Below are positions 479 to 560 of a stretch of 64,000 nucleotides of DNA, one piece after another. The translations under genes were made by a program, and so were the position numbers. Every line of letters starts with the position of its first letter. Within the stretch, counting starts at the first letter, position 1. The stretch is from the sequence record PQ471516.1; one strand, given 5' to 3'. The notes below the pieces were generated by a model. That model ran no database searches. It saw only the letters and a program-made list of their open reading frames with translations, and was not told the origin of the DNA.

Positions 479-560
479 CCGGGTGTATCTCAACGGTCTT
501 CTAAACCGTCGTTAATCGAGTAACTGGAGTATGCAGGTTCGAGTCCTGTCACCTGGGCCA
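479..560 (+). tRNA. non-canonical D-arm-less tRNA-like RNA, anticodon TCT (Arg)
   Basis: CCGGGTG/CACCTGG acceptor + G-CCA; ACGGT-CTTCTAA-ACCGT arm only 7 nt after the acceptor; 23-nt extra region; GCAGG-TTCGAGT-CCTGT T arm. Confidence 0.75.

Follow-up and report, generated by a model that had tools for sequence, protein, structure and literature searches.

Few shapes in biology are as conserved as the cloverleaf. According to a paper published in 2024, every bacterial tRNA known has this form (PMC11551756). The D-armless tRNAs of mitochondria, such as tRNA-Ser(UCU/GCU) in nematodes and mammals, lack a D hairpin between their acceptor and anticodon stems; they are used in translation, carry a short connector in place of the D arm and have lost the contact between the D loop and the T loop (PMC7609411). 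In the permuted and split tRNA genes of algae and archaea the order of the segments is altered, and these genes are processed to a standard cloverleaf (PMC3218864). In the tRNA-like domain of tmRNA, the acceptor stem and the T arm form a three-way junction with one long helix, and an analogue of the D loop, which is unpaired and contains GG, contacts the T loop. The stable RNAs C and D of phage T4 (species 1 and 2; 119 and 139 nt) are small stable RNAs encoded beside a phage tRNA-Arg gene, and RNA C ends in a tRNA-like acceptor and T arm.

The element described here is an 82-nt tRNA-like gene at positions 479-560 of a 64,000-nucleotide stretch of DNA (the window) from Escherichia phage Turkey5, a 351-kb Asteriusvirus-type jumbo coliphage, and lies within a tRNA cluster. 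The window matches the phage sequence (PQ471516) with 100% identity from position 287312. Judged by its sequence and that of its relatives, it is a structurally new form of tRNA that is specific to phages. It is apparently undescribed: no prior description was found in the open full-text literature, subscription journals being incompletely covered.

Comparison with known tRNAs and tRNA-like RNAs

The element shares its anticodon loop with the canonical phage tRNA-Arg(UCU) genes (T5 tRNAR, G17_00186 and T4 tRNA-Arg), and its acceptor stem (C1-G72, G3.U70, G73) and T arm are nearly identical to those of the T5 and G17 genes. Even the letters of the canonical D loop (AAnUGGA) and of the end of the variable loop (UAU) are present. 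What differs is their order. In a canonical tRNA the 5' strand of the D stem is followed by the D loop, the 3' strand, position 26, the anticodon arm and the variable loop, whereas in the element it is followed by the anticodon arm, a bulge, the 3' strand, the D loop and UAU. The predicted fold is a three-way junction with reversed connectivity of the D-like helix, in contrast to the canonical four-way junction.

In the element, as in the D-armless mitochondrial tRNAs, the acceptor and anticodon stems are not separated by a D hairpin. Unlike them, it keeps a D-like helix and the full D-loop sequence in a relocated position, its T arm is fully canonical, and its setting is bacterial translation. 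We rejected membership in the mitochondrial type because the D-like helix covaries and AAnUGGAG is conserved. The nearest analogue with a three-way junction is the tRNA-like domain of tmRNA, which resembles the element in its unpaired, GG-containing D-loop analogue (the contact with the T loop being predicted in our case). In tmRNA, however, this analogue lies 5' of the long helix, whereas in the element it lies 3' of it, and tmRNA is charged with alanine and has no anticodon, whereas the element has an anticodon arm. A tmRNA is further marked by a tag reading frame and G3.U70. The assignment to tmRNA was rejected, as ARAGORN called none, an anticodon arm is present and just 8 of the 67 aligned copies have G.U as their 3-70 pair. 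The same count speaks against alanine identity; G3.U70 is also present in the canonical tRNA-Arg of T5.

The sequence-only reading had proposed a literature check against the T4 stable RNAs C and D; a link to them found no support. Both are longer than the element and have no arginine anticodon arm in its layout. A covariance model of the family, which scores its members at 82-101 bits, reached at most 19.8 bits on these RNAs, namely on the 3' domain of rnaC, and gave no full match to rnaD. The permuted and split tRNA genes share with the element an altered order of segments. In the element, however, the acceptor strands already stand at both ends, and no form of processing could yield the standard order.

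Organization of the locus

The element and its immediate surroundings are made up of the following features:

350-378, + strand: promoter-like site TTGACT-17-TAAAAT with TG, matching the consensus at 10 of 12 positions
385-474, + strand: canonical tRNA-Ser(UGA), called by ARAGORN (Rfam 56.9 bits)
479-485, + strand: 5' strand of the acceptor stem, CCGGGTG, forming 7 bp (including G3.U70) with CACCTGG at 550-556
486-488, + strand: junction U8, A9, U10 between the acceptor stem and the D-like helix, invariant in the 67-sequence alignment A3; U10 lies opposite U521
489-492, + strand: 5' strand of the D-stem-like helix (C489-G520, U490-A519, C491-G518; A492 opposite C517)
493-509, + strand: anticodon arm, with a 5-bp stem ACGGT/ACCGT and the loop CUUCUAA
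510-516, + strand: conserved 7-nt bulge C-N-U-U-A-A-N, with C510 invariant and UUAA set by the search patterns
517-520, + strand: 3' strand of the D-stem-like helix (C517, G518, A519, G520), assigned from covariation in both collections
521-532, + strand: U, then AACUGGAG, then UAU, read as a displaced D loop and the last three bases of the variable loop (U48 being 532)
533-549, + strand: T arm GCAGG/UUCGAGU/CCUGU, with the stem formed by 533-537 and 545-549
550-560, + strand: 3' strand of the acceptor stem (550-556), discriminator G557 and encoded CCA (558-560), assigned from the sequence and from pair covariation
1461-1489: twin promoter-like site upstream of tRNA-Ser(GCU), a near-consensus match

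The 7-bp acceptor stem, discriminator, CCA, T arm and anticodon arm of a tRNA are all present, with the anticodon UCU at 500-502, U33 at 499 and A37 at 503. A canonical D arm is absent: no hairpin between positions 9 and 26 carries G18/G19 in its own loop. Its position holds just TATCTCA (486-492), while 23 nt, CGTTAATCGAGTAACTGGAGTAT, separate the anticodon arm from the T arm (510-532). This inventory of parts had already been drawn up in the sequence-only reading and proved exact.

The Rfam tRNA model RF00005 matches 479-557 with 33.3 bits, against a gathering score of 29, and the match requires the deletion of 15 D-arm positions and a 20-nt insertion in the variable region. Other members of the family scored 29.7-35.6 bits, with 5 of the 16 checked falling below the threshold; the neighbouring ordinary tRNAs reach 46-73 bits. 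ARAGORN called neither a tRNA nor a tmRNA at 479-560.

Only 4 nt (ATAT, 475-478) lie between tRNA-Ser(UGA) and the element. The two promoter-like sites share TTGACTAAATA.TCCAGTACTGATA.AAT, and each stands directly upstream of a tRNA-Ser gene. Since the site at 350-378 precedes tRNA-Ser(UGA), this tRNA and the element would be transcribed jointly, and the element would then be excised by RNase P and 3' trimming.

Covariation in the D-stem-like helix

Two collections of homologs were assembled. The first was gathered with a pattern derived from the insert, the anticodon being left free, and consisted of 98 IMG/VR stretches plus copies from phage records, which gave 67 distinct full-length sequences. 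For the second, the pattern was taken from the 5' side and the anticodon, and the insert was left free; this yielded another 67 distinct copies. Covariation was assessed as pair counts per column over the 67 distinct sequences of alignment A3.

The helices that the element has in common with ordinary tRNAs are well preserved in this alignment. All seven pairs of the acceptor stem covary (99.1% of cells paired), as do all five pairs of the anticodon stem and four of the five pairs of the T stem (also 99.1% paired). U33, C35 and A37 are invariant, and so are the TTC and the A of the T loop.

At the two variable pairs of the D-like helix, compensatory changes were found without exception. Pair 490-519 is UA in 41 sequences, GC in 16 and AU in 10, and pair 491-518 is CG in 55, GC in 7 and UA in 5; all 67 sequences are paired at both positions. 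The third pair, C489-G520, is invariant in both collections, each search pattern having set one side of it. Together these positions give eight complementary triplets: CTC/GAG, CGC/GCG, CTT/AAG, CAC/GTG, CAG/CTG, CAT/ATG, CGT/ACG and CGG/CCG. In the second collection, where the 3' strand was unconstrained, all three pairs are formed in 67/67 copies. Sliding the partner by one to three columns lowers the pairing of the D-like helix from 80% to 10-33%, and all slid or shuffled controls remained far below the true pairing. The covariance model built on the rewired structure scores ordinary tRNAs at no more than 35 bits.

The eight complementary triplets with zero mismatches show, as far as covariation can, that the anticodon arm is nested inside a helix of 3-4 bp formed by 489-492 and 517-520, with a 7-nt bulge on the 3' side, and that the fold is a three-way junction rather than the four-way cloverleaf. 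Position 492/517 (A.C in 39 sequences, C.A in 12, C-G in 5, A-U in 5, U.G in 3 and other combinations in 3; n=67, with a standard pair counted in 14) behaves in this alignment like a fourth pair that is often non-standard. A divergent subtype has A at position 10 opposite U, a hint that positions 10 and 521 may pair as well. The TA/TA bases beyond CTC/GAG never vary in the family.

Thermodynamic predictions point the other way. The nearest-neighbour energy is -18.8 kcal/mol with the D-like helix and -19.9 kcal/mol without it, i.e. the helix costs 1.1 kcal/mol, and it is absent from the RNAfold MFE and RNAalifold predictions. The D-like helix is supported by covariation, with the energy models against it.

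Several other pairings were considered and rejected. The CTC could in principle pair with the second GAG (527-529), which fails in 26/67 and 7/67 sequences at two positions. The MFE structure has a short hairpin within the insert, formed by 516-517 and 519-520 with 524-525 and 527-528, which was set aside. A GUUA/UAAC stem in the insert is contradicted because its closing pair does not covary (G-C in the window, G.G in FelixO1, U.C in 7t3). As for a UUA/UAA pseudoknot, the Arg(ACG) subtype, which has a shorter bulge than the main family, keeps UAA without a UUAA partner, and in the main family these bases are invariant.

The nesting of the anticodon arm had been proposed in the sequence-only reading, which suggested covariation across homologs as a way of checking it; that comparison, given above, bears the proposal out through the compensatory changes. 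The partner named there, GAGTA, occurs twice (518-522 and 527-531), and it is the first copy that pairs with CTC, while the second fails as described. The same reading had placed the GG of the insert outside the helix and free to contact the T loop, a position that agrees with the nested topology predicted here.

A putative displaced D loop and the predicted tertiary core

The insert is the most conserved part of the element in the 67-sequence alignments (UUAA being set by the search patterns), and UAA(n)UGGAGUAU is found in 59 of the 67 copies collected with the insert unconstrained. Canonical T5 tRNA-Arg(UCU) has the D loop AAGGGAG and the variable loop UUUAU, and the D loop of the G17 tRNA-Arg(UCU) is AAUUGGAUA. 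Because of this likeness, we infer that the 11 nt between the helix and the T arm, AAnUGGAG-UAU, are a D loop that has moved, and read them as A14 A15 n16 U17 G18 G19 A20 G21 followed by the end of the variable loop with U48.

In such an arrangement the displaced loop would supply A14 for U8 (U8 with A522) and A15 for U48, while its G18 and G19 would contact the T-loop elbow. A528 would be the equivalent of A20 for recognition by ArgRS; in bacteria, A20 is the main D-loop identity element for this enzyme. The bases of these proposed contacts are invariant in the family. The strand connectivity of the D-like helix is opposite to that of a normal D stem. Counting U10.U521, the three pairs, the A.C position and the five pairs of the anticodon stem, the rewired core would form ten stacked layers, the number that the D stem, 26.44 and the anticodon stem provide in a normal tRNA, and this equality would keep the distance from the anticodon to the elbow. 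We assume that the structure fits the H69 contact of the ribosome as well as ArgRS.

Probable arginine identity and putative role in translation

With the pattern that left the anticodon free, the only anticodons recovered were UCU (nearly all copies), CCU and UCG, and in looser relatives that share the nesting they are ACG, GCG and UCG. All anticodons of the family, i.e. UCU, CCU, UCG, ACG and GCG, are thus those of arginine. No non-arginine anticodon was found in the rewired layout at the loci scanned for units of acceptor stem plus T arm that ARAGORN misses. For bacterial ArgRS, the identity set of tRNA-Arg comprises C35, U36 or G36, A20 of the D loop and A or G at position 73. Members of the family have U or G at position 36. 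As discriminator, 35 of the 67 copies have G and 29 have A (G or A in 64/67), and an A directly follows the GG (UGGA) in 65/67 copies of the second collection.

The genomic context points in the same direction. In the sister phage G17 the same tRNA-Ser(UGA) is followed by an ordinary 77-nt tRNA-Arg(UCU) (G17_00186), which occupies the slot of the element, 4 nt past tRNA-Ser(UGA) and ahead of the same small ORF, with flanks that are ~95% identical. FelixO1 has 25 ordinary tRNAs, including Arg(ACG), and the element is its sole UCU species. Among the 34 element-bearing loci with at least 10 ordinary tRNAs, an ordinary Arg(ACG) occurs in 21 and an ordinary Arg(UCU) in 1; several of the 'tct' calls made by ARAGORN are the element itself with a wrong 5' end. 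Both forms occur together in a few phages (L064, L108), so they are not strictly exclusive. AGA and AGG are rare in E. coli; they account for 26% and 9%, respectively, of the arginine codons in the long ORFs of the window.

Based on these observations, we suggest that the element is a working tRNA-Arg(UCU) with a rewired core that serves AGA codons, a reading to which we assign a probability of roughly 65%; a function in translation is likely. The host ArgRS would charge the RNA through C35, U36, the A20 equivalent and G73, and the charged RNA would then read AGA (and AGG). The identity as tRNA-Arg(UCU) had been put forward from the sequence of the window, and the arginine-only anticodons, the exchange in the G17 slot and the usual filling of the UCU gap now support it. 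The restriction to arginine could also be historical, with a single origin in a tRNA-Arg gene and subsequent drift of the anticodon, since all anticodon changes stay within C35.

Why the rewired form is kept is a matter for conjecture, and our leading guess is that some host factor recognises tRNA-Arg by its normal D arm or core and that the rewired form evades this factor. Taken as a whole, we would describe the element as a natural topological isomer of tRNA, in which the D loop and the anticodon arm have been swapped around the 3' strand of the D stem. According to this tentative proposal, which we hold to be somewhat less probable than its negation, the molecule would be L-shaped, charged by ArgRS and able to decode arginine codons. 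It would have been born in phages, spread over phages of Proteobacteria and Actinobacteria with at least five arginine anticodons, and been maintained by escape from a host factor (a defence nuclease, a toxin or a decay pathway) that recognises the core of ordinary tRNA-Arg.

Distribution in phages and bacteria

A blastn search matched the 82 nt at ≥80% coverage in 266 of 50,697 phage records, and ~75 IMG/VR contigs carry the element. The carriers include Asteriusvirus-type jumbo phages (PBECO4, 121Q), FelixO1 and many Felixounavirus, T5-like Klebsiella and Serratia phages, Vequintavirinae, other coliphages of 145-150 kb, the Salmonella jumbo phage 7t3, the 69-kb phage Bas93 and Streptomyces phages. 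Most records leave the element out of the annotation, and others list it as tRNA-Leu, tRNA-TERM, tRNA-OTHER, tRNA-Undet or plain tRNA; in some it is overlaid with an HNH reading frame.

The situation in cellular genomes is different. A pattern scan of one genome per species (185,579 bacterial and archaeal species, 596 Gb) returned 93 matches, of which just 5 were true copies, all on contigs of metagenome-assembled genomes. The element was found in 0 of 5,426 complete E. coli genomes. This near-absence from bacterial genomes suggests that the form is not simply neutral and not simply equivalent to the cloverleaf.

Alternative explanations

The confinement to phages would also suit a decoy or sponge, i.e. 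a tRNA-Arg mimic which absorbs or blocks a host tRNA-targeting nuclease or toxin and delivers no arginine. The anticodon loop does not vary and is of the host type, and phage tRNAs are reported to counter tRNA-cleaving defences such as PARIS (bioRxiv 10.1101/2025.02.04.636281). However, a decoy needs neither a perfect acceptor stem, discriminator and CCA, nor a 3' end adapted to the host (the copies of Streptomyces phages have no CCA), nor diversification to five arginine anticodons, and one would not expect to find it in place of the sole tRNA-Arg(UCU) gene or as the sole UCU species of otherwise full tRNA sets. We consider this explanation rather unlikely, and the decoy for host anticodon nucleases, offered in the sequence-only reading as the alternative to a tRNA, loses ground through the anticodon diversity, the gap filling and the G17 slot. 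A tRNA-like RNA acting outside translation (for instance in regulation, as a primer or as the donor in non-ribosomal arginyl transfer) seems distinctly unlikely. The non-canonical layout, found in phages only, and the very strong sequence constraint on the junction and the bulge, which could reflect a dedicated protein partner, would be consistent with it, but no conserved partner gene adjoins the element, and the anticodon and gap-filling patterns point to decoding.

In FelixO1, Riker, Kamaji and AidaStucki the element has HNH endonuclease genes as its immediate neighbours, which might indicate that it matters as DNA, namely as a target or immunity site of the homing endonucleases that inhabit the tRNA clusters of phages, with the RNA being irrelevant. 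Such a reading is very improbable, because compensatory changes that preserve RNA pairing in four helices are not explained at the DNA level; moreover, the neighbouring HNH proteins are only 16-23% identical to that of FelixO1 and do not form one family, and the copy in the window has no HNH neighbour. The lack of a common HNH family also led to the rejection of a linked HNH cassette. Finally, the lack of an ARAGORN call, the borderline Rfam score and the mostly missing annotation could be taken as signs of a decaying tRNA pseudogene that has lost its D arm and gained a junk insert. Yet the element is kept in ~266 phage records over unrelated phage groups and hosts, all of its stems covary, and the supposed junk is its most conserved part, so that judging from the alignments this explanation is for practical purposes refuted.

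Significance of a putative rewired tRNA

If the putative tRNA-Arg(UCU) is used during infection in the cells of E. coli, Salmonella, Klebsiella and Streptomyces, bacterial translation accepts a core wired in another way than that of the cloverleaf. The element might then offer tRNA engineers a natural scaffold that looks orthogonal. Its recognition would set right the annotation in hundreds of phage genomes, that of FelixO1 among them, in which the gene is missing, mistyped or hidden under a protein call. The restriction to phages provides a concrete lead for work on tRNA-targeting defence and phage counter-defence.

Other genes of the cluster

The tRNAs called by ARAGORN in the cluster are Gly(UCC), Ser(UGA), Ser(GCU), Asn(GUU) and two Thr(UGU). 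Directly after the element stand three tandem paralogous 54-aa ORFs (582-746, 743-907 and 904-1068), each of which begins with MTHEEWM and has a stop that overlaps the start of the following one; G17 has these ORFs as well. A tRNA(CAU) gene (1739-2044), missed by ARAGORN in its split form, is interrupted in the anticodon loop, after the T of CAT, by a 230-nt group I intron (1777-2006), which Rfam places at 1685-1998 with 95.1 bits. When 1739-1776 and 2007-2044 are joined, ARAGORN recognises a clean 76-nt tRNA-Met(cat). The cluster also contains the Asn(GUU) gene and the two Thr(UGU) genes, at 2775-2849 and 4290-4443. According to a published report, the PARIS nuclease AriB attacks the Asn(GUU) and Thr(UGU) tRNAs, and the versions encoded by T5 serve as counter-defence (bioRxiv 10.1101/2025.02.04.636281).

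Divergent subtypes and further tRNA-like units

Divergent rewired tRNA-Arg genes were found at L133:478-558, 3326-3405 and 3407-3496 (the same as in L139), L096:11835-11924 and L080:13332-13429, contig L133 thus carrying three rewired arginine genes. The bulge is shorter in some of these subtypes, and in some an additional hairpin precedes the T arm; their anticodons are GCG, UCG, ACG and UCU.

Three other groups of unusual units were encountered. Contigs of actinophage type contain small tRNA-like units (L045:4061-4138, L085:13672-13749, L088:10862-10939 and L134:3080-3160) that ARAGORN misses, with a G3.U70 acceptor stem, an A discriminator, and a T arm (GGGTCTG...CAGATCCA), in which an anticodon arm could not be recognised. 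These units may be mini-RNAs that accept alanine, or pieces resembling tmRNA. Odd tRNA-like genes of leucine type, for which ARAGORN makes no call, lie at L080:4738-4820, L080:9209-9291 and L103:5350-5429; they have CAA or TAG in the anticodon loop and an oversized D region (…AATTGGCACAG…), without a long variable arm. In phage T5, rnaX (719 nt, L010:38-756) is annotated as 'stable RNA with unknown functions' and is located directly upstream of the canonical tRNA-Arg; at 101-175 it contains a weak tRNA-like match to the family model, with 24.9 bits.
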